A stretch of DNA of 64,000 nucleotides from Eutreptiella sp. 'Long Island Sound 2002'. Lineage: Eukaryota > Protista > Euglenida. A model generated the notes under the pieces. The model saw only the letters and a list, made by a program, of their open reading frames with translations, did no database searches and was not told the origin of the DNA. This document shows positions 13,899 through 62,880 of this stretch, piece after piece (positions within the stretch are counted from its first letter, which is position 1; every line of letters begins with the position of its first letter). Where the stretch lies: positions 194,618,001-194,682,000 of the forward strand of contig OZ038378.1 in assembly GCA_964036045.1 (NCBI GenBank), read 5' to 3'. Made by a program: the position numbers and the translations under genes.

Positions 13899-15400
13899 TT
13901 AAGCAATAAAGCTACAAGTGACAAAGCAGTAGACGGCGCCAAGGGCAAGAAAGGCAGCAGCACTGCGACCACAGATGTCAGCGATCTGGAACTCCACAAA
14001 TGATATGCAGTTGGGGGTTTCGATTGTGGGTCCAACTTTCTGAGAATGGTGAACCATTCGTTCCCAGCCCCCTGCTATCTGTAACCGTCGTTGAAGCTTT
14101 CCTCCCTGTCCAACAGGCTGCCAAAAAACAAGCAAAAATGTCTGTTTTCCCAGTGTCCTTGCTGGCAACGGCGAGCACACTGGACTTGTCGTACAGAATG
14201 AGAGGTGGAAAGGCTAGAAGGGTGGTAAATGCCAACGTGAAATTATGAAATATCATCCCGTGAAATTATCACATCGCAGGTGATTACTGGTGTGTGAAAA
14301 TTGTGCCGAAATTCTAAATTTGCAAACGCGACCCCATCCGTTTTGCTCCCAAATCCCAATCAAGTCCCAATCGATCCCTTAACCCGTTGTCATGCAGGGA
14401 AACAGTCAGGATGCATACTCGATCATGTCGATTACATAGGATGGATTAATCACAAAGCTCAACTCAGATGCGCAGATACTCTGATTAGACACATACGGAG
14501 AGGGAAACAGCAACAGTCGCCAGCTACGGCGTACGACTATTGCTATAGTGTTGCATGCGGTCGGTTTGCTTCCACGCGTGTCATCAGACGCGCAAAACAA
14601 AAATGCACACCCAAAGTACGACCAAGCTTACCTCTGCGTCGCCGAGACCAAGGGGCCACGGAAGAGGCGAATTTTTGTCGTCCAATTCCGCTGGTCTTTC
14701 CAGCCGGATTGTGCTCTGTGGGTTGACGACTTTCGATACAGACACGCTCTGCTCATTCGTCACCGATGGGCGACACCCGTCTCTGTTGGTCGACTCGGCA
14801 TGCCCCCCCCCCATAGATTGGTGGAGCGAAGTTGCAAGAGTTGCTGCACAGCGCGCTGAGCACGGCAGATTCTTGTGGGGAGGGGCAGGGTGCACGAGTT
14901 TGCGCTCCAACAGCCTGCAGCGATATCGCAGTGATTGTTTCCTTTTCTGGGCAGTCAATGTGTTCATCTTCGTTAGCTGAGTGGTGTGCAGCTATCACTG
15001 TGGGCACTTGAGTTTGAAGTGCTCTGGTGAACTTTCTTGGTCACTGTGCCAGACACATTCAGAGGGTCACAAGGTCCTGTGAACAGTTGATGTGCACGAA
15101 TCCGACGCAGCACGGCAGGCCCTGTGCTGCGTACTATGCATGTGCTGCGTACATGGTGAAGATAAGTTGGAGGTCTTGGATTTTGTGTGGGCTCGTAGTC
15201 ATTTTCAGTTTGGTTGTGTACAAACAGCCGACAAATCCCATCTGGCAAGTGGAGTTCCTGATTACAGCCAACATGGCGGGCCACTCCCATGAGTGTTCAA
15301 CAAGAGCTGGGCATTCACGTCACCTTTCCCCTCCCTGCTGCGATTTCGTGGGCGCGAGTTTTTTCGCCCCTTGACTTTGATAGGTGTTGGTCTCATCCCA

Positions 15401-18400
15401 ATGTCTGCCCGCAAGGCTGTACCTCTTTCCAAGCGCATACTGCTTTCCCTTGCGCCAAGTGTCGTCAATCAAAAGAGTGGACCTTCTCTCAGCAGGTATG
15501 TTGCGACGCATGAGACCAAAAACCAGCAACCCGCGAAGTCAACACAGTGCACCCTAACTACTACGATGGTACAGCGATACGATTCGCATCACCAATTTTT
15601 CACATATGACCACTTTTGAGGCTTTGAGATAGCTCCCTGCACTGGAAGGACACCAAGATCGTTTCAGTTTTCACGGGTCGAGCGCCGCTGCCAAAGTTTT
15701 CAACAGACAAATGAAACGGGTGGACATGCGTTTACACCAACTGGCATGGTGGACACCCTTCGTTCCACTAGGGTTGGAGCAATAGTTGAGCAGATTTCCA
15801 AAGCCATCAAAGACCAAAAGAAGGAGGCCATCATCGTTGCAGCCAAAGGACCGACACCCGCGCTGTACCCAAGCTTATTTGAGCAGGTGATTTCCGCTAC
15901 AATTAGATACCCGCTGGCTTTCAACTCTTGCTTCCCGGATTCCGTCCTGAATCATTCGCCTTTTTGTATTCAGTATGGTGTGCAATGCACGCCCGTCCAA
16001 TCCACAAGTGCAAGTGATGTCAAGGCTGAGATTCAAACCCTGTTGTCGCAAGGACAGGTGCCCTTGGTCACAAAGGTATGCTTGCACCAACGAGGAAGCT
16101 CGCCGCTTTTCCGAAAAATGTCTGCAGTCAGCAGCTTTGGTTATATCAAATCCCTAGTTGCCACGAGCACGAACAAGTACATCAGTACTGACGTGCTCTT
16201 TTCCTTTTGGAAAACAGGCGGTTTTCTGTGTTGTTGTCCAAAAGCAGCGCACGCAGAGCTGTGTCGGGCATTCGCAATGCAAGCTCCCAGCAGTATGGGC
16301 TTTTGTTTTGTCCAGTTGTTCGTCTCGAGCCTCTTTCCCCTGAAATTGCCCTGTGGAGGGTCGCCCATGCAGGTTAGGACATCGGGATGCACAAAAGTTG
16401 ACAAAGACACTCAAGTACGTGAAGCGGCCGGAGGTTCGGGTTGGGAGCTATCGGAAGTAAACAAAATTAGGAAGTATAAGTCAACAGCATTACCAATCAC
16501 CCTGCAGGTTGTGAAACATGCAAGAACTCCACCGTCCATAATCCCTCAGCCCACCAGAGCCGGATGGGTGGACGCAGCCGGCTCCGACAGACATCGTTCA
16601 TCCCGCCTCTCAGGACCGGTGCCAGGGTGGGTATGCAAGCTCTAGACAGCCGACCCGGGCGAGAGTGGGATCGAACGGCCCCCGGTCGGTGGTAACTCCC
16701 AACCAAAGAAGGTGAAGTGAACGACGGCTGGTGCACGAACTTATGTTCTTGGCACTTGGGTATCTATTTCAAATAAATTGAGATTGTGTTTTGGTTTGTG
16801 GTTTGGTTGGCTTTTCGCCTGTTTGGCTAAAATCAAGTGTAACAATATCTGTTCGTATCAGTTACACTTGATCTGAGCCAAAAAGGCGAAACCAACCAAA
16901 CCACACTCCAAACCACCTTCTCAATCTGGTTGAAAAAGAAAATGCCTCAGTGCCAAGAACATGAGTTTGTGTACCAGCCGTCTTTCATTCACGTCAGCGT
17001 GCACGTGCAGCGGAGGCTACCAGAGTATTGAGGCTTTAGGGTTGTGAGGACTCTTTCGAGCAGGGAGGCTGCTCACCTATCAAAAGGCGCCAACAAAATT
17101 TTTGATGCCCGATTCAGTTGGATTGCGTCACCCAGACAGCAAAATAACAAGGCACAAGGCCGCGTCAAACCCAGTAAAACAACATTTCAGCTTGACACTG
17201 CACATGATGGGCCAAAAGCCACCTTTCTTTCCCACACGACATGTCACCAGTCTCTCACAATTTGAGGGGAAAACAACACGCACGCCGAGTACCGTGTCAA
17301 GGCACGACGGATGTACTACAAAAACACTGGCCGGCGACCCTGGGATTACTCTAAAAGAGAGGGCTGGACCCTTCAACCCTCATCTATCGGACAGTTGAAC
17401 TGAACTGGGTTGGAATCCCAGTCTGAAAAGGCCCTGTCCAGGACGACAAGGCTGGTGTACGAGGGAAACCTCACTCACAGGCTGTGCAGTCGTCGCCTCG
17501 CGTAGCTTTGTTAAACGCAGATGTACCATATCGTTGGTTGAGGCCATTATATAGTCTGCAACACTCCTACTGGAAGTTAATGGTGCATTGTCCCAAGTTC
17601 CCGAACTGGATGGGGGTTGAGTCCCATTTCAATACCATTGGGGTGACAAATCAACAACAGTGCGGAACCACCTGCACATTTTGCTGCAGTGCTTCGGCAG
17701 GTGTTTTTGGACAGACTCCTCAACAATTCCCAGCCTCCAGGCGCCATGGGGACCCGAACGAGCAACATCTCGGTCGCACACGCACACGGAAATCCACAAT
17801 GCACTGGACACCTGGAATGCAAGCTGCAACCTCGAGCGAAACTCTCAGGTGCAGGTTCTGACGCACCCCATTGGCAGGTCTGCGCTTGAGCATGGAGGGG
17901 GGGGGGTACCCCACAACCGTCAGTTACGCTCCAATCGTATCTTTCCAAAGTCAACTGCGGCTGCGACGGTTGCGTAACCGCCGCCTCCTGCTCCGGCCCT
18001 CGCCAACCAGTTTTAGCAGCGCTTGTGGCACTACCCTGTGGCCTCCCTTTTTCAAGCGCAAGCCTGCCCACCGCATGTCGACAGGATTCTGACGCCGACG
18101 CGGCCCAGATCGCTGCCGATGCCTCGGCTGATCTTTTGGTGATGCTGTCCAATATTGAGGGAGTATTCAGTGACGCTCCGGGTAAAAAGGGGGCTCAGCT
18201 CATGAATTCCCTGTCCCCGTCGGAGGTATGTGCAGCAAATCAAGCTGTTGCATGTCATCGCTCACTGAGCCTACTGCCCTCGCAGCCTGGGCAATTTTCG
18301 CCGCAGAGGCGCGACGGGATGATTTGGATTCTGTCTGCCTGCTACGTGACAACGCCGCAGGCTGAGTGTGTCACTATCCAACAATTTTGCTGGTTTCTGC

Positions 18401-21400
18401 GCCCAAGGTGCTTTCCGAAGGAGAGGGGCCTCCCCCAAGGATCCCCTCCTCCCCCTGAGACAGCCGACCCCGGAGTAGTCAAACAGGACAAGTCAGCCAG
18501 GGGCTCCGTTGACACAACCAAAACACGTTCGGACCCACAGAGAGTCGGAATGTGCAGTGGCGAGAGGCCAATAGGCGCCGCCAAAGGTAAACAAACCAAA
18601 ACCATGGCCTCGTGCCAAAACCCCCCTCCCTCCTGTCACCCAGGGCCTTTGAAATTTGGTTTTGCCCTTTAGCGTCGCAGACTGAGTGTCCACAGCAAAA
18701 GGGTGCTGGGTTCCGCGCCACGCCCTGCTTGGCTCTTCACCCACCACCTCCTGCGTCGCCCCTCCGCACTCCACCGTCCAGACAGTGCAGTTCGGCAGCG
18801 GTGGAATGGAGGAGAAGGTGAAGGCCGCCCGGCAGGCCAACGGGCAGCAAATCAACGCCATCATCGCCGACGGGTCCCAGCAGGAGGTATGTGCCCCCGG
18901 ATCGCCCTTGTGCTCCCATCTGGTGGCCTGTGTGGACCGGGTGACATGGGGTGCAACAACACGCTGAAGTATCGTTGCACTAGAGTCCACCGATGTGAAA
19001 CCAGGCCAACACAAGGCAACACAGATGACATCAAGGCCGTCAAACAAGATCAACATCAGCCACAAGGAACACCGGTCGCAGCGACCGGCAGAACGCAGCG
19101 ACCCGACGCAGCACGCGAAGGGAAGAACGGGTGACTTACCAGGGCCCCGTAAAGAAACCGCAACCCGACGACATGTCGCACGGGGGGGGGGGGGGCGGTG
19201 GGTGCTGGGTTGAGGGCCGGGCTTCTGTTCCGATTCAAACCCGTTTCGCAGTGCCCAGACAACGGCGAGCACTCCACTGCCTGGCAGTTCTGCAGCGCCG
19301 CACCCCCGATGGAAGCAGGCTCGCTCTTTTCATTCCTCCCACGTCACGCACGTGAGAGCGTCGAGGGCCATTTTCTTTTCAACTCACCGCTTTGGGGTTT
19401 GAGGGTGCCTAGTGGGACACAGAAACACACGCAATTGGGGCGGTGTCAGGGTGTTTATTGGGACCTCAGTCACCTGCTGCGCCTCTTGTTGGGACACATA
19501 AACATTGAGGCCGCATGCCCTGCAACAACTGCCACTTAGTACGCACTACCTGAACCCCCTCCCCTCCTCCTCCCCCAGCGCCTCCGGCCAGAAGCCCCCG
19601 CCCCCCCGTTGCACACTCCAGACTGATCCAGGAGTGCACGGCGTGCATCCATTCCTCCAGACGTCCCAACGCACCGAGTCAAACCATCGCCCTCGTCCGA
19701 CTGGAATCCCAGTCGCCACAGGGCTGTCATGCGTCGGTGCTTGCTCGACGGGGCCTTTGGAAACTTTCTCTTGAGCTTGAGGAGGGCTGAGACTTGTAGA
19801 ATCGCGGGCCGGGCTCGACGCCCCCACATTGTGCGCCATGTGACGTGGTGTGGGGAGTTCTCAAACCGGCGCGGAGACGCCGGTGGCCGGGGACAGTCCG
19901 TGCGCCCAATGCATCGTGGCTCATGCGGGACTATGTGGTGGGGCATGCCGTGCGCGTCGGGCAGAGGAAGTGGGGGATTTGCCCGTGTCCTCGACCCCCT
20001 CTCCCCCTCGCGCACACACGGCCCAAGTCTGGCAAAGCAGTGTCAGACAGGCGTCCCGTGCCTGGACAGGGCCGTGTTGACCTCGATCTTCTCTGGGGGG
20101 TTTGGTCCCCTTCCGGCAACAACTCCTGGAGCCATCAGGAACACCCAACCGAAGGGGGTCGCAGGTTCAAGCACAGAGGGGGTGATGAGCACCACCAGCT
20201 CGTCGCAGGCATGACCCAGTCCCTCTTTCCCGCTTCCACCGGCTCACGAGACATCAATTGAGGGCTCAAAACTCACAGGGACTCTGCACAAGCGATGTCC
20301 AGTCTCATCACGTTTGTTTTCCGTTTGTTCGGAGGTAGAGGCTCGTCTGTGTGGGGCCGCATGTGGGGGTTTTCAATGTCAATGCCCGGAGAGCAGAATA
20401 TGGTGCCGGCTATGCTTGCCAACTGCGCTTGGTATCATCATTCACCCGGGGCATGTGTTAAGTGTAACACACACGATGGCACGGTCGCATGCTCGAGCGT
20501 CTCCTCGTGTCACGGGCCTCACGCATTCTGATGGCTCTGATGGGCTGCAGGTGGTGAGCCGCATCCTGAAGGGCGAGAACGTGGGCACCGTCGTCCAATT
20601 CGAGGAGGACACCACCGTCGGTCCGCTGCAGATCTGCCAGCAAGCGCGGCGAGGGCTGCGCGAACTCAAGGACTTGAGCGGAGAGAAGCGCAGTGAGCTG
20701 CTGCGCCGCGTTTCAAAGGTTCGCCTTGTCGGCAGATTTCAGGTGAGGTTTGGGTGCGGGGGCTTAGGCGGTGCCCACCACGCCACGCCACGCCACGCCA
20801 CGCCACACATCCCGATCACAACCCATCACACCACACCACAGTAGCCCAGGCACACTACGCGGCACAACACGCCGTCGGCAGTCGACTGGTGGTCTGGTCG
20901 AATAAGAGGAGGATGGGATTGGAAGAGCCGCGCGCTCGCAAGTTTCTTTAGCCTGCTTTTTGTGGTCTGCTGTGCGGTGGAAGGGGTATGCAGTCCCAGG
21001 TCTTGCATTTGTCTCTGTGCGGCGCTCGGGATCTCGACGTTTCCTGGGCTTGACCACAGGTGCTCTTGGACAAGGCGGACGTCATCTTGGAGGCCAATGA
21101 GAAGGATTTGGAATACGCCAAACAGACCAACCTCGATCCACACATGTTGGCCCGACTGAAGCTCTCAAAGGCCAAGCTGGAGACCCTGTCCAAAGGCATC
21201 AACGACATTTCAAACCAGCCCGACCCAATCGGTTCTCCCGTTTTCCCCGTCGCATCGCAAACGGTCGGTGGAAAGGATCTTCGAAGGGGGATCGGCACGG
21301 ACGTCCCCGCTTGGGACCAGTTCTGTGTGACTCGTGAACTATTGTTCCCCGTGCAGCGACCCAGCCGGTGCACTGGCGGTGCACCCGCGCCAACCACCCG

Positions 21401-24400
21401 GAAAGGCCCGGCGGTTTGCGCTGATGAAAGGGGGGGGGCTAATTATGGTGAGCTAAGCGAAGGGGGCGCGGATGAACTGGGGCGGGGGTGCCATCGAGAC
21501 GAGGTATCTGTGCCGGTTGGCACTTCCGGATGTTCGCAGTGGTTCAAGTTTTGGAGAGAAAACTGTCTCCACTGTTTGTGCCCGGGCGGTGAGACGTTTG
21601 GTGGCCAATGACTGGGACCGTTGTCCCTCTGCCCACAAGTGCTGCTTCTGGGGACGGGCCGATGTAAGTTTCCACGGATTTTGTCACGGGTGCCCACGTC
21701 AACGCACGTTGACGTGCGTCACGTGCGGCGCCACGAACATCACTGCGCTATTCTCGCGGGCACAAGATTGCTGTCGCAACACCCGTCAAGCAAGAATCGA
21801 CCGCCTCCCAAAGGGTCGGCAGAGGCGGTGCACCGCGTCGTCGCAAGTCGTCGCATGTGCGCCTGTTGTGTAGGCCAAGTGGTCGCTGCCCGGGAGATCA
21901 CTGAGGGGTTGGTGCTGCGGCAGGAGACCGTGCCACTGGGAGTGCTGATGGTGATCTTCGAGTCCCGCCCAGACGCCCTGCCTCAGGTTTGTGATGGATT
22001 GCGGGTCTCTAGTGGAGCCGCGTGAAGGGGGATTGGCCTATTTGGGGCAGCGGGAGTGCCGGGGTGCGCAGGCGTCATTGGGCTGCCGTGAGTGGTCGCA
22101 TTGGCATTGAGCATGAGCTGGGGCTGTGGGCACTGGGACGGGGGTCGTGGGCACTGGGGCTGGCGCTGTGGGCACTGGGACTCGGAGTTTGGGCACTGGG
22201 GCTGGGGTGGTGGGCATTGGGACCGGGCACTGGGGTTGTGGCTGCCCTCGCTGCGCCACGCACACGTTGGTCGCGTCTGAGCCCTACGTTCCCGCCAGAT
22301 TCCCTGCGCCCATCGGTGCGGCAATCCCCCGCGCCGGCGATTGGGCGGTTCAGTTTTGCGAAAAAAATCATGAATAGGACCGCAGCAACTGCCGTCTATG
22401 ATCACTGCTGAAGATTGGTGGTGGTTGCCTCTTGCCTTGTTTTGGGTGACCTAGATGAGTCGCGTGGCCGACATGCGCCACATGATCCAGGTTGTCGCGC
22501 TGGGGTTGCGATCCGGCAATCCGCTGATTCTCAAGGGTGGAAAGGAGGCCGCTCACACAAATGCGTGCCTTTTGGGATTGATCCATGAGGTATGTCATTG
22601 GTGAGCACATAAAGGGCTGCATTGTTGTGAGCGTATTCACGGCATCACGTTGTGCAAATGCGGTGCGGCACATTGAGTGCAATGTGAAGGTGTTGCCAGC
22701 CAGTGTTGCCAGCCAGATCCTGCGAATGGAATTCTGGAATATGGGAATGGGCAAGCAAGCGCATCGAGTTGTGCAGAAGGTCTCTTTCGGGTCACAACAT
22801 ATTGTGTGCGTGAGCAATGGCCACAAAGATTCCAGGGGGACGTAAACCCTTTTATTTTCCAGCGCCAAAATGATATCAAGCATGCCAACGTGTGGTGCTG
22901 TGGAATGCTTCAGGGCGAGAGGCTTGTTCTGATGCACTCTGAGCACCCCCAAAGGGCAGATCCACACACTTTCATGTCCCATCGAGTACACATTCCGCCC
23001 GAAATGCAAAACACCTGGTCAAAAATTAATACCAAGCCCTTGACAATGTAGGGGAGGGGGGTTTAAGCAAACCAGTTTGTATCAGCATGGATGAGCAATG
23101 TGCTTTTCTCCAACAGCACAGCATGGTGCAGCACAGTATGGCTAGAACACTCCAGTGGATCCATTTCTCACAAGCCCCCTCCCCCAGCCGCTATTGGGGA
23201 GGGAGGTTTCCACCCCCACCAGTATGGGGTCTGCCTGGACGCACCTGGCCAATGGCAAGGGCCGTCCTTCCTCTGTGTGGACCCGACCCAGTGCAGTGAA
23301 ACCGGGACAGTCTGGGCTCTATTGACACAACCCGACAAGGGAAAGGAAGGGTGTTGATAGGCTAGACCGGTAGATCAAGGGCATTGGTTGCTGAGAGGTC
23401 GAGGGGCACCGCCGCGTGCGGAGAAAACGGGGTCCAAGAAAGGACAAGGGTTGGTGCTGAGAGGCCAATAAGCGCCGCCAGGCATCACACCAACCCTGCT
23501 CCCCCCATAGCACAGCAGAGCACATGATTCACCCCAGAAACCTGAGCATCACATTTGAAATCAACACCCCAACTCATTCAGGAAACGCCATGGTTTTCTA
23601 AGCCGCAAGCACGACGCGTGACTCCCAACCCATCAACCAAAACCCCAAAGGGGGGGCGGAAGCCTCCAAAGCACAGGAAGGGAGCCAGGACACGACCCCC
23701 AGCACAACAGGTACAGCAAAAAGTAAAAGGAATTGGTGCCAGACCCATGTCTCATGCCACAAAAATGGAAGCCATTCGATTGCTGAGCACATTGCCCACA
23801 GGGATTGAGGAGCCGTGCCGCCTTCCACAACCCTACTTGGGACACACACCAGAGCACCTAGCCCTGCCTGCACACGTCAGTGAGGACCTTTCACACTTCC
23901 TGGAAGAAAGGAGATGCCTGGCCAACACTTTTCTGTGAGACTGACACTACCACGGGTGCGTTCATTGCAATTTTCTCATACTGATCAAGCGCCAGAGTTG
24001 CAGATACCCCAACCACAGAAAACAGAAGCGCCATATGCTACCTACATGGGTCAAAGGCCCCATGTCAAAACAACTCACACGATGGCGCGCGCGAGGGAAA
24101 CAAATGCTCCGACAACAAGGGCTATGGTTAGCAAGGCATGCTAAGCTGCTGGAGGGGGCGTATAACCATACCAAAACAGTTGCATCTAGGGCATACACCG
24201 CAAGACAGTTCCAAACCTGGCATCAAAAGGAGCAACACCGGGTCCAGGTCCATTGGGAATACAAGCAGGACCTGTTCCAATTTTTTCATAGACAAACTCA
24301 ACCTGCAACGCGCGGCCAAACGCTCCGGGAATCCCGACTCACTTCTGCACCACCCCAGCAAACGAGCACGACATTGAGTGGGTGGGCATGACACTAGCCC

Positions 24401-27400
24401 ATATCAGTTTGACTCAGGATCGTCATCCCTCACAGTTCTGGCAAGTAGTTTTTCCCTTATCCTCATATCTCCCAGAAGTGTAGTTTGTGGATCACCAACA
24501 AGGCATGGCAGTCGCGTCCCGCTGCATCCGCTGGTGACAGTGAAAAAGTCTCAAGTATACATCCCACCATCCTAGACTGCATGTGAACCCTCCACATGGG
24601 ATAATATATGTTGTACTTTACTTGCCACACAGAACGGGTCTGTCTGACTCAGCACTTGCGAGGCACAAGTAAGTCTGAGCAAAAAAGAAGGAAATCAACA
24701 CCCCAGCTCATTTTTTTCCAGCTCCCCTATTTCCAACAAAACCACATGAACAAGGGGGGGGGGATCTTTGCCTGGGACTGTTCACGTTTCAAATCGGCCG
24801 TGAAGTTTCCCACATTTTTAATCCCCTGTTCTTGCGGTAGGCAGGTGGTGTCGGCAGCCGGTCTGTCCGTCATGGCGCACTGCGTTGACGCTGGCACCGG
24901 ACGCTGATCCTGGCAGAATGTGGCACATGCGTGTCCCCTGCATCGTGAGTGGCGCTGGAGGCTGAGGCCTGCGTCCGCCAAGCCGCTACATTTCTGGGGG
25001 GGGCAGGGTCCGCGAAATTTCCACGGGGGTTTTTTGGCAGCCTCTGCACATTTTCACACCAGGCAGTCTCTCTCCGCAAAGTAGTGAGGCACAAAGCCCA
25101 CCTCCCCCTCCCAGCTGCGTTCCAACCGCTTTTAACCCTGGGCAAAGCATCCATCTACGCTTCTTGCAGGTGATCGCGCCTGAGGTCGGGGCATACACGT
25201 ATCAGCTGGTGGCAAGTCGTGAGGACGTCGCCAGTCTCATGGGAATGAACAACTACATTGATCTAGTCATCCCCAGGTAGCTCCTACAGGGCCAGACACG
25301 CACGGAAATTTTGCGGTTCGGCAAACAAACCGCTGTGACCCGTTAGTGCAGGTTTGGGGTCCGGGGAAGTGGGGGTCTGGGCCTACACTAGAAACGCCCT
25401 GCCCCCCCTGTGGGGGTGGAGGGTCAGGCAGGGTGGTGCTCCAGAGCAATCTTGGAACCCCCGCCCTATTGCGTTTGATGTGGGTGGGATGGGGGGGGGA
25501 TTGCACACACAGGCACACCGGGTTGGGGCCTCTACAAGGGTGGGGGTTGAGGTGGGATTTCCAGGGAAAGAGCTCTTTGGACCCCCCCTTCCTCTGGCCT
25601 TCAAAGTTTCAACTGTGGGACGTTGGTGATTACCCAGCAGCGGTTTTCGCTGAAGGTGGGTTACACTGAAGTGGGGGGGTAATGGGGGGGACCTCTACTG
25701 TTTGACGAATTGAAGCCTCATTGTCTGATGCCTGGCAGATTCTGCTGCTTTGCGGCGACCAGCTATTAGGCCATAAGGTGTTAGGTGTAGTGTGCAGCTG
25801 CGCTTCATCTGCACTCTTGTTTGCCACAGCGAAAGGCACCTATGACACGTCACCGAAGAGCTTTTCTCTTGGACTTTTGCTTTGCACTCCTGCTTTGTGC
25901 CAGATGGTACCGGTTTGCACACGCATCTGTAACCCATAGCGGGGGGGGGGGAATTGGGGGGCTGTGGGCGGTGGGTTCGGTTGCTTCTGGCCAACAGGTC
26001 GCAAAATGTCCTGGTGTAGCTTTCCGCATAGTGACCGGCCCAATGCATCCACCAAAAGTTTGGCAGCCTATGGAGTGGCTTTGGCTGAGTGCCTCTGAAG
26101 GACGCGCGTTGAGGGGTGCCAAGGGTTGTTCAGGGTTTTCATGGTTGTTGAAGGTTGTCAAGGGTTTTTGACAGTTGTTGGGGCTGCCAGGGGTTGACAA
26201 GGTGGTTGAGGGTTGCCAAGGGCTGGTCGTCAAGTGTTGTCATTAGTCCCTCATCCACCCGACGATCAACAACGCTCAATAACCCTTGCCAAGCTTCACA
26301 ACCCCCAATACCCTCAATACCCTCAATACTGGTGAGGGTTGCGAATGGCTGCTGAGTTGGTGAGGGTTGTTGACGTTTGGCGAGGGTTGTTGAGGTTTGT
26401 GAACCGGTGAGGCCTGAGGGTTGCCAAAGGCTGATGCCGTTGGTGACGATTAGTAAGGGTGTTAAGGTTTGATGAGGGCCGGCAAGGGTGGCTTGGGGCT
26501 GGCAGCAGTTTTTGAGGATTGTTGAGGGGGGGCGGTGTGTGTGGCCTGCTGGGGGTTGGCACGGGTGGTTGAGGGTGACAGGTGACAGGGTTGTTGGGGG
26601 TGGGCAAGGGTTTGACAACCGTCGTGTTTGTGGATGGGGGTGGGCACTCGATGCTTGAGTGTTGAGGGACGTTGAAGGCCGTGGACGCTGGCTAACGATC
26701 GGCGGACCCTCGTCGACCTGCAGTGCCCCAGGGATTGCAACAGAACAACACAGCGGCGCCAGCCACTTTGATGGTGAATTTGTGGCAAGCATGACAACAT
26801 GGGCATGATTGTTTGGAAGGGATTTCACCATTTTGGTACAGAAGGGCGTTTTGGCGTTGGTGGACCCCGCGCCCTGGTCTCCCGTTGACTATTGTTTACT
26901 TTCAAGCCGCGAGTGATGATGACTCAGCCGCGGTGTCATCTAGTTCCTATTTGTTATCCCCGTTTGCTCTGATGCCAAGTAGGCGCAGCAACAAGATTTT
27001 ATGATCCTTTCGAAGTGTGGGTGAAGGTTGGTTTTTGGTGGGTGTGTGGGTGGTGGGCCCCCTACCCCAGTCACCAAGCAATACGGGTGGTCAGACGGAC
27101 AAAAGCAGGTGCAGTGCGGAAGGAAGTGGTGAAAGTTTGTCCCGACTGACAGGGCAGAACTGGCCTCCACTGGCCACGGTGAATGACCCGGTCTGTAGAT
27201 GTTGGAACCGGGGGCAATGACGGCCTTTCTCGCGGTGGAGGCCAAGCTTGGGGCCGGTGTTGGAGCCACACGGTCCCTCCGCACCCACTGCGCAGGGGCT
27301 CCAATCAGATGGTGCAGTCCATCCAAAACTCGACCAAAATCCCTGTCATGGGCCACGCGGACGGCATCTGCCATGTGTACGTTGACAAGCTGGCGGATTT

Positions 27401-30400
27401 GGACAAGGCAAAGGAGGCATGTTTCCCGGCATCTCTGTGTGCCCTTGTCTCATGGGCATGGTGTGCCATCGGACCCTCAGAAGCAAGGCCTGACGCTTTC
27501 TGATGCCGCTCCCACAGCCCTCCCCCCGCTGCCCATAGATGGGGGCTTTTTTTATAGGGGGCTTTTTGCCCCCCCCCCCCCTTTTCCCTTTGTATGCCCC
27601 TTTGGCTCCCTCGTTCATATCCTTTTGAGTGTTCTCATTTGATGTTTGCCACACACACATGGTCGTTTCTCGCCTGCGTGAGTGTCGTCCAGGGCTGGTA
27701 AGTGTCATCCATTGAGGGCCAAGCACGTCTGATCTGGAGAATAAGATGCCTTCGTATCAGACGGTGGAGTGTAGTGCCTCCATGTGCATTAGTTGTCTAC
27801 AAACAGAATAGGCCAGATTTGCGCTCAGGCTGTAAATCAATAGAAATGGGTGCCAACAAAACCCAAAGCATAGCTTTGAGAACAGAGGGGGGGGAGGGGC
27901 TGCAACCTATTTCTCTTGGGAAGATGATTGAAAGAAAGAAAGACAAACAGTGGCCATGTCCATTTTGGGCGTATTTCTGGCTACCTGTCTAAGCTACACC
28001 CGTTGTAGGGACCTTGTTTTATTAACGGGGGGGTGGGGGTGCAAACAATACAAGCCGGAGCATTTCTTAGCCTGAGTCATTTGTGTGAAGCCCGAACCAA
28101 GTTGTGGGCTGAGTGCTCGTAGTTTGGATGGTTCCCAGTGCGCCATTTTGATGGGCATCAGCCCTGCCGTCTCCCTGGAGGAGAGAGATCTCATCATGCC
28201 TCATCATCACACTTTTTCCAAACATCACCTTGACCATGGATGAGCGCATGTCCCCTTTGATATTTGTGCTGCGTCATCTTGTCTTTTTCCCTCTTACTCC
28301 CTTTCATACTTGACCCTAGTCTCCGGCAAGAATTTTGGCCACCTCCAGCAGCCTCCGGCAGAAACATGAGGTTACATCCTCAGGCAGAAGTTTGGTCCAC
28401 ATCCAGCACGCTCCGGCAGGGCACAGCACCACTCTCCCAGAAGCGTAAATAAAAGTTTCTGGGAGGGCAGCGGGGCACACCTGGAGACTGTCGCCGCTGA
28501 CGAAGATTGGTGTGGAGTTGTGAGCGCGCCACACAATCAATTAAAACCCAACCGCACAACAACACTCACATCTGGCAGCCTCTGGCGCAGGAATAGGCCA
28601 CATCCGGCCGCCTCCGGCAAGAGGTTGCCTTCACATCTGGCGGCCATTGGCATGCCGGAGACTAGGGTCAAGTATGCTCCCTTTCATGGTGTTGACGCAC
28701 ACGCACACGCACACGCACTACACACTACTGAGCTGTGGTTTATGAAGTGACGCATGCAGTCTGCAGTCTTGATTGTGGCGGATTTCCCCTTGTATTTAGT
28801 GCCGGGCGACCTGAAAATTGCACCAAGGGGGGGGGGGGAGAAATGGGCTTCCGTGCTGGGCCCTTTGTTTGTGTAACAATGGATGTTGGCGCCAAAGGCG
28901 CCGGAACACAAATTTTGGCCCCAAAAAGTTTTTTCCACTAAAACCCCACATATATGTACTCAAAATGATCGGCGCGAAGGGGGGATCATTTTGAGCCATA
29001 TATGTTGGGGTTGACACCCCCCCCCCTGAGAACCCCACTGTTCCCCAGCCCTCCGAACGCTTCTGCGAGCGTGGGCGATGGATTTGCAAGGGGAAAGTGT
29101 TGTCAAGTGTGCCCTTTCGTGGTACATAGCGTCTACACCCTAAGATCCCTTCCCCTGTCGGCCCCACCCCGTTGGGTCAGTCGGGGCGTTTTGCTGGATA
29201 CCCATCCCATGGATATGTGAGAACAGAATATCCATTTGTTGGTGCTGACGTGACCCGCGGGGCTGGTGAAAATTTGACTTGGGGGCGGGCGGGGCCCTTG
29301 GAGCGCCCCCAAACTTGAGCGGGGGGGTTGCGAAAAGGGGCTCCAAGGGCCACAAGCTTATTTCCTCACTAGAAATGTCTGAAAGTTTTGGCTCCAACTT
29401 GCTTATGGGGGGGGCCCACGTACTCCACAAGGGCGGGTGCTGTGGCCGGCGCGCCGGGAGGTGCTCGCCATGGGGGTGGCAACAGGGCCGTGACCAGCCA
29501 ACTGCGCACGGGACAGTCCACGTCGTACGGAGATGTGAAATCCTTGTACGGGGGGGCAGGCAGGTGGGACAGGAGGGGGTGCGCGACAGGGGCACCCAGG
29601 AGCGCCAACAGACATGGGGAGGAGCCTCACAGACACACAGAACGCCGGAGCCACACCAGGAGGAACAAGGGTGAGCATAGCAGACAAGGAGGAGGGGCAC
29701 AGCAAGGCAGGAGAGGCAACCAGAACAGTGGGAACAGGGAACCAGAATGGAGGGGATGGGAGAGCGTGTGCATGGGAGGCAGCGACAACAAAGGGGATGG
29801 CCTGGCCAGCCAGCCCCGTCGCTACCGGGTGCCAGGGCAACCCCTGCTCAACCGGCATCAGGTGGGGGGGTGTCTCCCGCAGCCCAGATGGGCTGTTTGC
29901 GCAACAGGAGCGGGAGCCCACCAGCCGTGAGGGGGAAAAGGACATATGGTGGATGGCCGGGACAGCGCATGGAGGAACAGGGCACCTGGGCCTCACAGAA
30001 ACACAGCGAGGCAGGCTATAGACGGCCTGTGGACAGAGGGGTGTGGACAGCAAAAACAGTCAACGACCCCGGCAACAACCAGCACATCCTCAATAAGCCA
30101 ACTATTGGGCGCCGCTGATGTGCAAACGGCACACCATGCCACATTCAGCACAGCCCCAACACACCAACTACTGGGCTCTGCGAATGCGGAAACGACACCA
30201 GCAAGAGCACCGGCCGCAGCTGCCGGCAGAAAGCTGCAACCCGACGCAACATGCGAAGGGAAGAACGGGTGACTGTCCAGGGCCCCGTAAAGGAACAACA
30301 ACCAGACAGAATGTCACACAGGGGGCAGGGATGTATTAGAACGGCTGACAACCATAGGGGATCCCCGCCCCCCCCCCCCCCTGGAGTGACACAGTGACAG

Positions 30401-33400
30401 TGACAGTGACAGTGACAGACTATGACAGTGCCAGTAGTTTTGTCATGGAATATTCATGAAAAACATGGCCCTTGGAGCCCCCCTCCAGGGGGGGTGGGTT
30501 TGGGAAATGGGCTCCAAGGGCCACCCACCCCCCCAAATACCTTTATGCCTGACTGTGGAGTGCATTACCTCTGGTTTGCATTTGTCTGTTTTTTAATTAG
30601 GTCACACCCCCCCAAATACATTTTTCGGGAGCCCAAAGTGTGGGGGGGGGGACACCCCTGTTGTGCGCCCTTTCAGATTGTTGTGGATTCGAAGACGGAC
30701 TACCCCGCTGCATGCAATGCGATGGAGACCCTTCTGATTCATGAAGTATGGATGGCGCAGTGGTGAGGGGTCAGGCAGTGTCGTCCAAGTCATGCTTGCC
30801 CCCCCCCCCCCTTCAGGCCCCATGAGTGACGGGGCTCCAGATGCGCGTTGCACCTCCTCACACTTGCTCCTGCTGAAAGAAAAGAAGGTCCGGAGGAGCC
30901 AAGCAATGACCCTGTGTGCAGTACCCAAAGAGGCAAACGCCGGGGGCATTGACCGTTTGGAATCAGAAACAATTGTGCTGAGTCTTAAAATGCCTCGTCA
31001 TGCTAAAGGTACCCGCGTTTGATACCCCAGCCTGTCTCCATTGCAGGGGGCATTCTCTTACTCTTCATACCTTTTTTGTGAACTTTAAAGGGGTCCCCTA
31101 CAGGCCATGAAGATGTGTGTGAAGATATGGATTAAGTCTATCATGATACATGAAAGCACAACTATTGATAAAGTAGAATGTGAAGCACTGAAGCATTTAG
31201 TGGGAAGCTTCAAATTTGCTTCAAAACGATGCAAGTACTGCGTACAGTGGAAGGATTGCACAAGATTGGAAGCGCTTTCATTGCTTAAGAGGGTTTTTCT
31301 AGCCGAAAAGGATGCAGATTCGGATAAGCTTAATAATGTCCATAAATTGCCATCACAACCATGGGGTCCTATAGGGACTGTTTACTTCAGGTAGCCGTGC
31401 AAAATCAACAGGTTGTGGTGGTGGTTGTAGTGTAGGTCAACGTCAGAATCCACTTTTGTTGCTTCTTCTGCAGTCCTTTTCTCCCCTCGGGGGCGTTGTG
31501 TAGCCTTTTTCCCTTGTTCTCTCGTGGGATCCGCCCTTTGTGCGTGCCCCTCCCCTAGGCCCAGAACACATCACCACAAAGGATGGGCACGCACAGGCTA
31601 TGCAGCGTGGGATGCTGCACCTGCACGTTCTGTGCAGGATCTGCTCAGCTCAGGCAAGGCCTCCGAACTTGTGAAGGCCGCGCAGGCCTCCAACGTGAAG
31701 TTCTATGCAGGCCCTCGTGCTCAGAAGGATTTGAGCGAGTTGGGACTCGAGGTGTGTGCGTACCCGGCTGCCTGTGGGGGGGGCTACCGGCCACCGGCAT
31801 GTGGGCCCTCCATATATCGCATGAAGTCGCCCCCCCCACACCTTGGAGGTGTGGGGGGTGTGGGGGGGTGTGGGGGGGGGGTAGGAGGTGTGGTTGGGTT
31901 GTGTGTGGTGTGTGGGGGGGGGATGTGTGGTGGCAGGGGTGGGGGGGGGGCAGGGACTTGCTTTAATTTTCATTCCGGCAGGGGGGGGGGGCATGGGGGG
32001 GCCGTCTCCTCGGTTCGGGTACGCGACCCCCCCCCCCCCCTCCCTGCCCTCCGGGCCCACTTAGTTACCAAGGGTCAATGGCTATAGGCCATACACAGGG
32101 TTGCGCCAAAGGCGCCCGAAAATTTTGTCCCCTTTGCTGGGAACCCCGAGAATGCAGGGGTTGGGTAGCATTTCCGCCCACTTGCGGGCCCCCAAGAAGG
32201 CAGGGGTGAGGTAGCCAATTTTGATTTTGAGGTAGCCACTTTTGATCAGAGCTTTTGAGCGCCAGATATCACAAGACGAGGCGCTATACAAATGTCGTTT
32301 GTTGCGAGGTGCTTTCCAGCAAAGACCAGCAAGACGGGCCGTTATACAAATGGCGTTTGTTGTGCAGTGAAGATCCTGCATTCGGAGCAAAACCCCGGCC
32401 CGAGTGCAGCGCCAAATTCTTTCCGGGTCGAACGCGTTCTTTCTTTCTTTCTTGTTTCTCTTTCCCATGCTTTGTTGCGTGGCCCCTCGAGTTGGGTTTA
32501 GGGACTCACAATCCACGCTTTGTTGCGTGGCCCCTTGAGTTGGGGTTAGGGACTCTCAATCCACGCTTCAGTGTGGCCCCTTGAGTTGGAGTTGGGGACT
32601 CGCAATCCACACTTTGTTGCGTGGCCCCTTGAGTTGGGGTTAGGGAGTCGCAATCCACGCTTCGGTGTGGCCCCTTGAGTTGGGGTTAGGGACTCACAAT
32701 CCACGCTTTGTTGCGTGGCCCCTTGAGTTGGGGTTAGGGACTCACAATCCACACTTCGGTGTGGCCCCTTGAGTTGGGGTTAGGGACTCACAATCCACGC
32801 TTCGGTGTGGCCCCTTGAGTTGGGGTTAGGGACTCTCAATCCACGCTTTGTTGCGTGGCCCCTTGAGTTGGGGTTAGGGACTCACAATCCACGCTTCGGT
32901 GTGGCCCCTTGAGTTGGGGTTAGGGACTCTCAATCCACGCTTTGTTGCGTGGCCCCTTGAGTTGGGGTTAGGGACTCACAATCCACGCTTCGGTGTGGCC
33001 CCTTGAGTTGGGGTTAGGGACTCGCAATAAGCGACATTTTTCCGCGTTTTTTAGGTAAGTGCGGCAAAGGGCGGTTCCCCGTGTCATAAAACGCCCGCCC
33101 AGCACCGTGCCCAAACCCAAACCCGTGTGTGTGTCGAAACCTAAACCAATACCAATGCACTCGCCGCAGAGCGATGGGAGTAGGCACCCGGAAAAGCATT
33201 CGCCGCAGAGCGACGGGAGTAGGCACTGTCTGGGTGGCATGGTCATTAAGAGTCGCGAGTTGCAGAAACTGAGGCGCTTGGTGCAGCCCTTGTATGCACA
33301 GTTGTCTTTGTTTGATCGCTGCTTTGCTGCCATAAGATCAAACGATTTGCCCCGTCTTGCTCAAATTTTGAAGAAGACAATGGAGTGGGGGTGGGGATTG

Positions 33401-36400
33401 AAACGGATTGCCCCTCTTTTAGAGGATGCCGTGCATGCCAATCGCATGCACTGTGGGGCGAATGAAAGGCACCTTGCTGTGCTTTTGTACCGTGTTGCCG
33501 GCCCCACAGGTTTGCAAGCCATGCATGCAGAGAAGCTGCTACCGAGTGTGCGGTAGTGCACTCGAATTGCAAAACAGGTTACCATTGCGATCTCTAGCAC
33601 TTGTTCCGTGGAACCCCCTCATGCTGCATTTGGACCCCTCCCACGGGCTTCCATCGCTTGCCTCAAGGATGAGATCTCCATCACAAAACGGTTGGTGGCT
33701 GGTGTGAATACATTAGAAAATGTATGCCACTGTGCACCCCATCCCATCCCCTTCACGTCCCTTTCGGATTTGGCAATCCCTCTTGCAAAGCTGGAGAGTG
33801 GCGAATGGCACATAGCCAACTGTGCCAAGGTGACAGCCGTTGCGCGGCACTCACAGACTAACTACATGCCTGTAGTGGTTTCGTGCACAGCCTCATGCAA
33901 CCGTTTTACGGGTGATGATGAGGTTGAATCCATCTTAGAGTTTGAAAAGAAATGGGGCCAAGTGGCTGCCACCATTGGGCCGTGCGTCCAATATGCCAGT
34001 GATGGGGATAAGCGGCGTGCCGCTGCATTCCTTTCATCATCTTTCATAATTTTTCCGCCGAAGTGATTTCACTAGATGGTTTTCTTTTCTTGCAGGTTCG
34101 TCTGCTAAAGTCTGGTGCCACTGTTACAAAGGACATGTGCCACATTATAAAGCGATTCGTTCGCCGCTTGTTCAGCAAAAATGCTTTCCGTGTGCATGGC
34201 GTTACTATTGACGTTGATGTCTTGTGCACGTTGGCAAAAACCTTGGGGGTTGCGCGCCGTCTAGCCAATGCTATCAAAGAAGTTGACCGGATGCTTTTTA
34301 GTCTGGTGGGGTGCTTTGTCAAAAAACTTTGCCCAAAGCGGTCCTCTGGGCAGAGAAAATTTACCGACGCTTTTGCAAGTTAGGGTGGTCCGCTACCTGG
34401 GTGTCATATTCACACCCAGTGAGCTGCCAACCACTGGCACCGTCTCAAGCACTAGGGGGAGGCCTTGCCGGAGCCTAAGGCGGGGCTTAAATGCGGAGGC
34501 AAGGCCCCCCCCTCCGGTTGCAATGGCGCTGTTCCCGTTCGGCAGTGACAATTGGAGTGCGGAAATATGAGGCAATCTTTCTGAATCCTAAAATGAGCCT
34601 GTTGGCATCATGTCGGTTCCAAATGCACTCATAATCATTGATCGCATAACGGAGATTGCTGTGGCGGACCACACCGACCTTGACCCCTTGCACCACGCCC
34701 AAGCTAGGGCAGTTCAGAGGGAGAGCTTTTTAAGTGAGCCGTGGGGGAAGTGGAAAAAAAAGGGACGGAACGAGCTGTATTTGTGTATATGGCGAAGGAA
34801 AAAAAAACCTACTACCGTAGAGCAGTACTTGTGTGTACGGCGAATGAAGAAAAACCTATTGCCATGAAGCAGTACTTGTGTGTACGGCGAAGGAAAAAAA
34901 AATTAATCGGGTGCCTCGTAGGCCTGGGCAACCTGCCAGGCACCCAGCTGCTCTCCGGTGTGACGGGCCGTGTCGAAGAGAACAGCATATATATACGGCC
35001 CTTCCTAGGCACTGGTGAGGAGGTAGAGTGGAGGCCTCCGTTGTTGTGGAGTAACCCCTTAGGCCACCGCGTCTCTGCCAGACTGGACTAGACCTCTGCT
35101 AACCCTCTCCCCTAGCCCCCCCCCCCCCACTAGCAACTAGCAGCGACTAGCTAGTCCCTTAGAGAAGCCCTCCTCAGCGGCTAGCCCCCCCCCTAGGGGC
35201 CTTCGGCCCACTTCTACGGGGGGGGGGGTCGCGTCTAAAAGCGAGGAGACGGCTCCCCCCATGGGGGGACCCCTCCCCCCGGGACCCCCTCCCCCCCTCC
35301 CCCCTCAGCTCAAGTGCACTCGAAAACCTGGGTTTTCGGAACATTTTTTAGTCATGGGAAAAAATTTTTCGGCGCCTTCGGCGCATGCTACACCTGTGTA
35401 CATATTGCTCCATGTGTGCTCCATCTCCCTTGTTTTCTAGACTACCATGCCCCACGCTCGTTGTTAGTGTGTTTCAGCTCCCCGGTCCCACCGTTGCCAC
35501 GCGCAAAACGTAATTTGCGCGCTGCTCTATTTTAGGTTTAAAGATAGGATCAGCGGTCATAAAAGACAAAAAGCCGAGGTACCCTCTGATCCACAGCCAG
35601 TGGATGATGAGGAGCTGCCTGATCATTTGTGTGATGTCTCCCATTTAGGCAGTGACTCAGGTTCGTCATCATCATCAGGTTCCAGTTCCAGTTTCCACTA
35701 CCCATGGGGTTCCAGTTCAGGCGAGTCTAATTCTGACTGACAAGAAAGATCACTGTCATTTGGCATGAGATGGTGAATGTCCCGCTTTGTTGTAGTTGTT
35801 TTGTATTGGTGAGATGTGGGAACCCTGAATTGACATTCAATGATGAATTTCTTTGTTTACAGCCGACAACATGGCATTTCCATGTGCTGAGTTGTTCATT
35901 CTCCAATAATTTTTCTGTAGTGGATTGGGTATGTTCCGGCAGGGGGGGGGGGGGGGGGCTCCCCCCTGGACCCCCTCCACGCTCAAGCAAGTCCCTTCGG
36001 GGGGGGGGGGGGTGGAGGTGTGGGTGGGTTGTGTGTGGTGGGGGGGGGGGGGGGGAAGTGGGCTAGCTCTCGTGGGTGGGATCTCCAACACGCAGCGAAC
36101 GAGATTTGTATAGCGCCTCGTCTTGCGGAATCTGGCGCTCATAGCATGGACCGGTTGAGGAACCACTATGCCCTTGCACAATGTGCAAAATGAGCCAAGA
36201 TGTGCAATGTGCGGGTGGGAAGGGTTGGCAGTGCATGCACAAGGCGTTGCACACACAAGGCGGTGCACGCACAAGGCAGTCTGTAGCCACCGCAGGAGTC
36301 TTGTTATTTAAGGGGGGTGCGGGGGCTGGCCCCTGCGATGAGCGAAGCGAGCCAAGGTGCCCGATGTGTGTGGTAAGGGTTAAGGGGGTATGAAGCGAGC

Positions 36401-46696: not shown

Positions 46697-47592
46697 TCAC
46701 GCACTCCACAAGGGCGGGTGCTGCGGCCGGTGCGCCGGGAGGTGCCCGCCATGGGGGTGGCAATAGGGCCGTGACCAGCCAACTACGCACGGGACAGTCC
46801 AGGTCGTACGGAGATGTGAAATCCTTGTACGGGGGGGGGCAGGCGGGTGGGACAGGAGGGGGTGCGCGGCAGGGGCACCCAGGAGCGCCAACAGACAGGG
46901 GGTGGGAGGAGCCTCACAAACACACAGAACGCGGGAGCCACACTAGGAGGAACAAGGGCGAGCATAGCAGACAAGGAGGAGGGGCACAGCAAGGCAGGAG
47001 AGGCAACCAGAACAGTGGGAACAGGGAACCAGAATGGAGGGGATGGGAGAGCGTGCGCATGGGAGGCAGCGACAACAAAGGGGATGGCCTGGCTAGCAAC
47101 CCCTGCTCAACCGGCATCAGGTGGGGGGTGTCTCCCGCAGCCCAGATGGGCTGTTTGCGCAACAGGAGCGGGAGCCCACCAGCCGTGAGGGGGAAAAGGA
47201 CATATGGTGGACGGCCGGGACAGCGCGTGAAGGAACAGGGCACCTGGGCCTCACGCACACAGAAACACAGAAACACAGCGAGGCAGGCTATAGACGGCCT
47301 GTGGACAGAGAGGCGTGGACAGCAAAAACAGTCAACGACCCCGGCAACAACCAGCACATCCTCAATACGCCAACTATTGGGCGCCGCTGATGTGCAAACG
47401 GCACACCATGCCACATTCAGCACAGCCCCAACACACCAACTACTGAGGTCTGCGAACCCGGAAACAACACCAGCAAGAGCACCGGCCGCAGCGGCCGGCA
47501 GAAAGCTGCAACCCGACGCAACATGCGAAGGGAAGAACGGGTGACTGTCCAGGGCCCCGTAAAGGAACAACAACCAGACAGAATGTCGCACA
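46697..47592 (+). mobile_element. Dispersed repeat A, ~900-bp copy
   Basis: Highly similar to 29417-30320. Preceded by a poly-C tract (~46667-46686) and followed by G runs. Confidence 0.85.
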
Positions 47593-48193
47593 GGGGGCGG
47601 GGTTATAGGTGGGGGGGAGGTTGTAGGTCAGGGTTTTGTCCAATTTTGCCTTTGGCGCTTTGCGCCATCTGTTGTTTGCTGTTTGTTTAGTTTCCGCTTA
47701 TTTTTTCCCTCGTGGATATTGATTTAGATATGCCCCACGCCGCACAGCTCAGTCTTTGAAGTTTGGTGAGAAGGGGGGGCTACAGGTCCCTGGATGACTG
47801 CAAACAACGGAAGGTGGGGGTCAGAGGTGGGGGGGGGGGGTAACATTGGGGGGTTACAGCGCTGCATGACAACAGCCAAAGGGGCTCCCTGTGCATGCAG
47901 TGCCCACACAGCGCACAGCGTTTGTACCACCGGAAGTACTGGGACCCTATTTCAAGCCTCACTCTGCTCTGGGCATAGACCAGTATCATGGGGTATGGGC
48001 AGACAAGGATGCCTCGGAGAAGGTGATGACGATGATGAGTTGCGGTTTGGTGCATTTTTTGTACCTCAAGAGTTCAATGGTTGTCCTGCAACGAAGGTGC
48101 ACGCGGTGCCCCTACAGTGCGCAAGCCGTGCATCGTTTCCCCCCGCACAGCGGCCCCATCAGCGGACACAGGGCATTGGCCCCATTTTCACAG

Positions 48194-62880
<14,687 letters not shown>

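Follow-up and report, generated by a model that had tools for sequence, protein, structure and literature searches.

A stretch of 64,000 nt from Eutreptiella sp. 'Long Island Sound 2002' (contig OZ038378.1, positions 194,618,001 to 194,682,000; hereafter the window, with positions counted from its first nucleotide) has the character of nuclear DNA, with many introns and a G+C content of 50–60%. It carries a 16-exon gene derived from pyrroline-5-carboxylate synthase (P5CS). We regard this gene as the representative of a probably euglenophyte-wide type, in which a working reductase would be fused to a conserved yet catalytically dead kinase domain, the kinase reaction would be left to a separate protein, and the dead domain would serve above all in assembly; we give this reading a probability of about 0.62. 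An earlier interpretation of the same DNA (the original prediction) had proposed a pseudokinase-reductase that needs a separate kinase. The lost kinase residues, the intact reductase, the conservation in Euglena gracilis and an annotated separate kinase all speak for that proposal.

Gene model and transcripts

The gene spans 15401–38907 on the plus strand. Its coding sequence of 1923 nt, followed by TGA at 38905–38907, encodes a product of 641 amino acids (aa), and the frame is open throughout, without any internal stop. The original prediction had placed the locus at 15401–20620; the start was correct, whereas this span covers the kinase-like half only.

Exons 1–7 were read from assembled RNA contigs of four runs from three studies, which were aligned to positions 15251–21250. 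X1 and X2 are estuary metatranscriptomes from separate studies, and X3 and X5 stem from one organism ('organism A'). All six joints (15495/15772, 15886/15974, 16075/18085, 18225/18782, 18886/20551 and 20718/21060) were identical in the four runs, with GT..AG borders throughout and no mismatch between contigs and window, and they reproduce the exon chain of the original prediction exactly. Run X5 includes a contig of 3274 nt, which is long enough for a full-length mRNA. The original prediction had singled out the 2009-nt intron 3 (16076–18084) as a place where an exon might have been missed; no contig of the four runs used an exon there, and tblastn with Escherichia coli ProB as query detected no hidden kinase-like exon at 15–21 kb.

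Read support extends over exons 1–7 and the start of exon 8, while exons 8–16 were built from open frames, AG/GT borders and homology. The exons beyond exon 8 are backed by the colinearity of the reductase with positions 321–711 of the NCBIfam model TIGR01092, by the E. gracilis protein described below, and by the published length of a Eutreptiella gymnastica open reading frame (ORF), whose 648 codons equal the 641 of our model plus six codons of 5' untranslated region and the stop. Intron 11, which follows exon 11 and spans 27417–30676, is of the GC-AG type with the donor GCATGT, whereas every other intron of the gene has a GT donor; this GC border belongs to the modelled part of the gene.

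At the 5' end, the contigs of X3 and X5 begin at 15383 and are preceded by a loose end, ATTTTTTTTC, in which we recognise the tail of the euglenid spliced leader. The 5' end of the mRNA is therefore trans-spliced, and the ATG at 15401 is its first AUG.

Kinase-like and reductase halves of the protein

The kinase-like remnant comprises aa 1–212 and is about 70 residues shorter than a canonical kinase domain. Exon 4 begins at position 168 of TIGR01092 and at residue 105 of the protein, and about ten further positions are gone between exons 4 and 5. Motifs were mapped by global alignment to E. coli ProB and by a multiple alignment that also comprised E. coli and 21 fragments of canonical P5CS. 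In the global alignment, K10 of ProB corresponds to S16 and S50-G51-A52 to K57-G58-P59, and about 30 residues around AAVGQ are gone inside exon 2. N134-E135 is replaced by T103-K104, and N136-D137 together with about ten following residues is gone at the junction of exons 3 and 4. D148-N149-D150 reads D105-S106-D107, T169-D170 reads S126-N127, and K217 is retained as K163 within GGMEEK. Only D148, D150 and K217 are thus kept among these motif residues, which falls short of a competent glutamate-kinase site. The replacement of the catalytic Lys by Ser, the invisible NEND motif, the change from DND to DSD and the retained GGMxxK had all been noticed in the original prediction. Its change from TD to SN holds for the second residue, as canonical P5CS itself has S-D at this position and D to N is the only real change there.

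In the kinase part, 26 columns do not vary between canonical P5CS and E. coli ProB, and 15 of them are retained; losses concern NENDA, N149, T169 (Ser, also in canonical P5CS), D170, S207, L254 (Val) and F255. The kinase-like part shares 30.5% identity with canonical eukaryotic P5CS, compared to 35.6% for E. coli ProB, whereas the reductase reaches 50.4%, compared to 36.9% for the E. coli enzyme. As the kinase part is further from canonical P5CS than ProB is and the reductase closer, the divergence is confined to the kinase-like domain.

The amino acid kinase fold is still recognisable. Exon 4 alone matches Pfam PF00696 with 28.7 bits at a cut-off of 24.9, and the C-lobe aligns to E. coli ProB with z=11 in a shuffle test. 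The kinase exons that profiles recognise are exons 4–6 (TIGR01092 168–317). The lobe on the ATP side is the part that is retained; strand beta1 is without its catalytic Lys, and the glutamate-binding lobe is for the most part gone. To our knowledge, this Lys is conserved throughout the amino-acid-kinase family. The domain is predicted to be catalytically inactive.

The reductase half (aa ~213–641) presents a different picture. A 401-aa alignment of residues 218–611 with E. coli ProA has 35% identity (E=1e-84) and only small gaps, and Cys459 aligns with Cys598 of Drosophila P5CS, the catalytic residue of that enzyme (PMC8963878). In the alignment with the 21 canonical fragments and E. coli, 80 of the 92 invariant reductase columns are retained, and the 12 changes are mostly conservative. 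The full-length similarity and the Cys in the context xxCNAxETLL identify the half as a gamma-glutamyl phosphate reductase, and the original prediction, which had found all ProA motifs and the catalytic Cys in place, was right in this respect. For most exons the P5CS profile gives a better score than proA does, as seen for the last exon with 58.9 versus 34.4 bits, and exons 4–16 match TIGR01092 168–711 in order, with the kinase-type part preceding the reductase as in P5CS. Scanned exon by exon, the scores on TIGR01092 sum up to ~410 bits, with nothing from exons 1–3 and 13; the curated cut-off, which applies to whole proteins, is 796.75 bits. Taken together, the reductase half is complete and of the P5CS type, and it is predicted to be a working enzyme.

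Conservation in Euglena gracilis, a separate kinase and alternative readings

The supplement of the E. gracilis mitochondrial proteome prints the protein EG_transcript_6612, which shares an orthogroup with CAMNT_0000704965, the 648-codon ORF of Eutreptiella gymnastica, and carries a gene ontology term for the reductase only (PMC7403612). The alignment was made by eye and identities were counted by hand. Over aa 1–212 it has no gap and 125 identities (~59%), distributed over the N-lobe (57/104) and the C-lobe (68/108) and including 14 of the first 22 residues; aa 213–300 of the reductase are ~75% identical. E. gracilis shares the Ser in KRVLLSLSPSVV, AKGPTPA, LSN and GM-Q-EK, and it reads IPIVTQDGD where NEND...DND would be expected. 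Common to both euglenids are hence the Ser, AKGPTPA, VT-x-D-x-D, LSN and GM-x-EK, and the C-lobe motifs best kept in both are ADLLV-x-LSN, GV-x-SD-x-P and G-x-GM-x-EK. Since EG_transcript_6612 is derived from cDNA, it independently confirms that no exon was skipped between exons 3 and 4.

Eutreptiales and Euglenales are separate orders of Euglenophyceae. A gapless and conserved alignment between them points to a degeneration that is old and ancestral to the phototrophic euglenids, and to a degenerate sequence that is held by purifying selection and is not decaying. The original prediction had named shared degeneration in relatives as a check, and E. gracilis displays it with the same substitutions. 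Lost catalytic residues in a conserved sequence are the mark of a pseudoenzyme under selection, here seen with one relative compared by hand count. The conservation suggests that the dead domain has some function, and its role is probably non-catalytic.

A candidate for the missing activity is listed in the same proteome. EG_transcript_15413 is annotated as 'glutamate 5-kinase' with the KEGG orthology (KO) number K12657, a mitochondrial prediction, ~fourfold enrichment and ~21 peptides in mass spectrometry; the orthologue from Eutreptiella gymnastica (CAMNT_0000669581) has 292 codons in an ORF that is partial at its 5' end and has a stop after 291 aa, and EG_transcript_18537 is a related entry (PMC7403612). 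Judged from ORF length and stop, CAMNT_0000669581 is kinase-sized and without a fused reductase. It is the putative active partner kinase.

We propose that the N-terminal domain, having lost the catalytic Lys and most of the glutamate lobe, would be unable to make glutamyl phosphate, that the fused protein would act solely as a reductase, and that its substrate would be supplied by the separate, P5CS-type kinase-only paralogue. In the simplest history, a bifunctional P5CS would have been duplicated, with each copy losing a different function. The dead domain would have been kept by selection, likeliest as an oligomerisation or docking module for reductase assembly, and the reductase might assemble with the active kinase paralogue through it. 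An assembly or docking role is favoured because the kinase domains build the tetramer core of P5CS (PMC8963878). In E. coli, glutamyl phosphate with its half-life of 320 ms reaches ProA by diffusion without channeling, and separate ProB and ProA suffice (PMC11573504). The option of a reverse pathway, also raised in the original prediction, found no support.

Several points weigh against this reading. Exons 1–3 reach only z=1.7 against shuffles in the comparison to E. coli ProB, which has no significance alone, and they are without any Pfam or NCBIfam match, so that their homology to kinases rests on colinearity. The lost block of ~30 residues is ambiguous, as it may be either the SGA or the AAVGQ stretch, and MAFFT and BLAST pair VAAKG with AAVGQ. 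Under either alignment one glutamate-site motif is deleted and the other mutated; the original prediction, in which SGA had become AAKG and the AAVGQ stretch had been deleted within one exon, stands to that extent, its assignment of the two being ambiguous. Only two species were compared, and conservation does not tell which function is conserved; it might also reflect an unconventional catalytic role. The competence and the P5CS origin of the separate kinase rest on annotation. Finally, assembled RNA contigs drop rare variants and minor isoforms could have escaped.

A more specific form of the proposal, a 'split P5CS' in phototrophic euglenids, is tentative. After duplication, one copy would have been reduced to the kinase, whereas the other would have kept the reductase together with a dead kinase domain. 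This dead domain would behave like a prozyme, pair with the kinase paralogue via the old kinase-kinase interface and thereby rebuild a hetero-oligomeric P5CS, and it may control the activity of the kinase. Trypanosomatid prozymes such as the AdoMetDC prozyme are dead paralogues that bind and activate a live enzyme. The likeness would lie in a dead copy kept under selection in Euglenozoa beside an active paralogue; unlike the prozymes, the dead copy of Eutreptiella forms one polypeptide with the enzyme that catalyses the following step of the pathway.

In the main rival reading, which is rather unlikely, the N-terminal domain is an allosteric or nucleotide-sensing module, which would bind ATP or ADP (or proline or ornithine) via its C-lobe and tune the reductase without a kinase partner. 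The nucleotide-contacting motifs of the C-lobe, including Lys163, are indeed preserved best and differ least between the two euglenids. However, D170 is changed to Asn, N149 to Ser, and the Gly-rich loop of beta1 is altered, which in our reading of this enzyme family are positions that help to hold the nucleotide phosphates, and the site for proline and glutamate sits in the largely deleted lobe. Feedback control of canonical P5CS, on the other hand, works through the kinase domain (PMC6099280).

The domain could also be a functionless relic on the path to the complete loss known from Leishmania and green algae, its frame being kept open solely because any stop or frameshift would abolish the reductase that follows. 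Relaxed selection ahead of an essential domain would be expected to leave in-frame deletions and missing catalytic residues, and complete loss of the kinase domain was reported in other lineages (PMC11061531). Nevertheless, the gapless alignment of the 212 residues at ~59% identity between Eutreptiales and Euglenales, including the first 22, is at odds with neutral drift and renders this explanation improbable. We consider it very improbable that the domain is a still-active kinase with an unconventional site and the protein a bifunctional P5CS. Lys163, both Asp of D-x-D and the core of the fold are retained in a conserved domain, but the beta1 Lys is missing in both species, deletions have removed one of the two glutamate-site motifs as well as the NEND segment with Asp137, and a separate kinase (by annotation) is expressed. 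That the short kinase domain is an artefact of missed or alternative exons is hardly conceivable. It would be favoured by the length of the introns (up to 5.3 kb), by the non-conventional introns that also occur in euglenids and by the loss of rare variants from contigs, but the joints were identical in all four runs, the introns at 15–21 kb hold no kinase-like ORF, the E. gracilis protein, itself derived from cDNA, aligns colinearly and gaplessly, and the published Eutreptiella ORF length agrees.

Compared to canonical P5CS (ALDH18A1, plant P5CS1-2, Drosophila P5CS; TIGR01092), the Eutreptiella gene has the same domain order, a P5CS-type reductase and tail and the catalytic Cys, whereas its shortened kinase domain has lost the catalytic Lys and the NEND segment and no longer has SGA and AAVGQ as an intact pair. 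A 'hook' at Drosophila 105–128 joins kinase tetramers and locks P5CS filaments (PMC8963878). By approximate numbering (E. coli 5–141 ~ Drosophila 57–211), the deleted N-lobe stretch (E. coli 55–84) would overlap this hook, and filaments of the canonical kind would then not be expected.

A reductase-only 'partial P5CS' was described for Leishmania, Leptomonas, Angomonas and several green algae (da Silva et al. 2024, PMC11061531). For Leishmaniinae and chlorophytes, the authors proposed that the P5CS kinase domain is lost through relaxed selection once another kinase exists, and they raised the possibility that some algal P5CS kinase domains are non-functional; euglenids lay outside their sampling (PMC11061531). 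Like 'partial P5CS', the Eutreptiella protein would be a P5CS-derived reductase depending on a separately encoded kinase. These lineages deleted the domain outright, whereas euglenophytes have retained it in a degenerate form that is conserved among them. Furthermore, the separate euglenid kinase carries the P5CS number K12657, whereas trypanosomatid ProB was placed among bacterial sequences (PMC11061531).

No paper describing an arrangement of a dead kinase and a reductase in P5CS was found in the literature searched, which agrees with the original prediction, in which it was not known as a described family. The E. gracilis orthologue EG_transcript_6612 with the same substitutions was published only as part of a list, and we found nothing written about its kinase domain; the tables of Butenko et al. 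2020 are without proA or proB columns.

P5CS is the textbook example of a kinase-reductase fusion, whose presumed benefit is the protection of a highly unstable intermediate. In other lineages, either this fusion was kept or the kinase domain was deleted; euglenids seem to have disabled the kinase half and yet conserved it for a long time beside a separate kinase. They may thus provide a natural experiment on the non-catalytic jobs of the P5CS kinase domain (assembly, filament formation, regulation) and on whether the proximity of the two active sites matters, which was disputed in 2024 from work on the two E. coli enzymes (PMC11573504). In metabolic reconstructions, a 'P5CS' annotation of a euglenid gene should not be taken to stand for a glutamate kinase.

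Feature coordinates, database searches and further observations

Table 1 Exons of the P5CS-derived gene and its trans-splicing acceptor, in window positions, with the content and the support of each feature.
Feature	Position	Strand	Content and support
AG acceptor for spliced-leader trans-splicing	15382–15383	+	Contig starts of X3 and X5; mRNA body begins 17–18 nt before the ATG
Exon 1, aa 1–32	15401–15495	+	Start codon, degenerate strand beta1, Ser16 at the catalytic-Lys site; RNA joint, alignment to E. coli ProB, kept in E. gracilis
Exon 2, aa 32–70	15772–15886	+	Helix A, AAKGPTPA, ~30-aa internal deletion; RNA joints; no family match
Exon 3, aa 71–104	15974–16075	+	Remaining N-lobe, ends with VPLVTK at the place of NEND; joint 16075/18085 in 4/4 runs
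Exon 4, aa 105–151	18085–18225	+	DSD, LSN; Pfam AA_kinase 28.7 bits (152–199); TIGR01092 168–210; Drosophila P5CS 232–274
Exon 5, aa 152–186	18782–18886	+	GSGGMEEK with Lys163; TIGR01027 204–235, TIGR01092 226–257; RNA joints
Exon 6, aa 187–242	20551–20718	+	End of kinase-like C-lobe (ENVGTVV), linker, start of reductase; RNA joints; TIGR01092 260–317
Exon 7, aa 243–300	21060–21231	+	Reductase; joint 20718/21060; loose end after 21232 resumes at 21875; matches to proA and P5CS profiles
Exon 8, aa 300–337	21874–21986	+	Reductase; loose-end match; TIGR01092 380–414
Exon 9, aa 338–370	22491–22589	+	Reductase, NADPH-binding ILKGGKEA; TIGR01092 415–446; in-frame AG/GT borders
Exon 10, aa 371–406	25170–25276	+	Reductase; TIGR01092 450–482
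Exon 11, aa 406–446	27296–27416	+	Reductase; TIGR01092 484–522, 60.8 bits; followed by the GC-AG intron
Exon 12, aa 447–469	30677–30745	+	Catalytic Cys459; aligned to Drosophila P5CS 588–608 including C598
Exon 13, aa 470–507	31638–31751	+	Variable part of reductase; in-frame AG/GT; colinear with E. gracilis orthologue; no profile match
Exon 14, aa 508–553	37008–37145	+	Reductase; TIGR01092 585–629
Exon 15, aa 554–586	37376–37474	+	Reductase; TIGR01092 631–662
Exon 16, aa 587–641	38740–38907	+	P5CS-type C-terminal tail, TGA; TIGR01092 663–711, 58.9 bits versus ~34 for proA

An exhaustive HMMER search with the exon 2–3 stretch against 1.84 billion representatives returned only the window's own genomic ORF (P0001). 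The same single match resulted from a word-index search with a 341-aa ORF scored on exons 2–3, in a length range (188–597 aa) that leaves out proteins of 641 aa. A profile of the 341-aa ORF and an unrelated 393-aa carrier (the antisense ORF of locus L004) yielded only P0001 and one match to the carrier (P0122) among the best 8000 candidates; this carrier profile scored the spliced protein at 103 bits offline. The spliced Eutreptiella protein is probably missing from that database at 216–688 aa. An exact search of JGI metagenome contigs for the junction of exons 3 and 4 gave no match. Scanning with exon 16 matched canonical eukaryotic P5CS (L002) and bacterial proA loci, which were used for comparison, but no euglenids, and a search with the L002 reductase led to 120 stramenopile-type P5CS fragments, all with canonical kinase motifs.

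Two candidate readings were rejected. Proteins P0003, P0004, P0008, P0064, P0075, P0105 and P0118 (~505–513 aa, some labelled 'type:complete') resemble a reductase-only P5CS; they begin at the Met of the kinase GGM motif and are truncations from ORF calling. Exon 1 could be taken for a mitochondrial presequence, as no acidic residue precedes Glu38; this was not adopted in view of the identities among the first 22 residues in E. gracilis.

Locus L003 (Ga0160423_10090759) carries at 23–2090 proC followed by a stand-alone P5CS-type reductase with a P5CS-like C-terminal tail. This reductase is 48% identical to that of Eutreptiella, with up to 88% in the region of exon 15, and may bear on the horizontal-transfer history of P5CS.

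The introns of the gene contain several repeats. A dispersed element of ~130–140 bp occurs at 19052–19192, 30205–30325, 36837–36971 and 47463–47602, with three copies in introns of the P5CS gene and one downstream; the copies are 81–83% identical and adjoin poly-G runs. RNA contigs stack on the copy at 19.05–19.25 kb to a summed depth of ~1000, and the family is abundant in transcripts. At 18468–18633 in intron 4, RNA contigs of each of the four runs likewise reach a very high summed depth, with 90–95% identity and many variant positions; this segment is single-copy within the window and probably belongs to another expressed repeat family. In intron 3, 16712–16992 forms a 281-bp imperfect palindrome (78% self-complementary), probably an insertion resembling a miniature inverted-repeat transposable element. 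Its match to a plant miRNA-precursor model (47.6 bits, gathering score 180) is due only to the hairpin shape. The 5.3-kb intron 13 holds at 33059–34380 several plus-strand open frames of 120–170 aa without obvious low complexity, which may be remains of mobile elements. Downstream of the gene, at 50201–51430, an open frame of 410 aa is built of PPTAIGY heptads in tandem, with 431 aa also open on the opposite strand.

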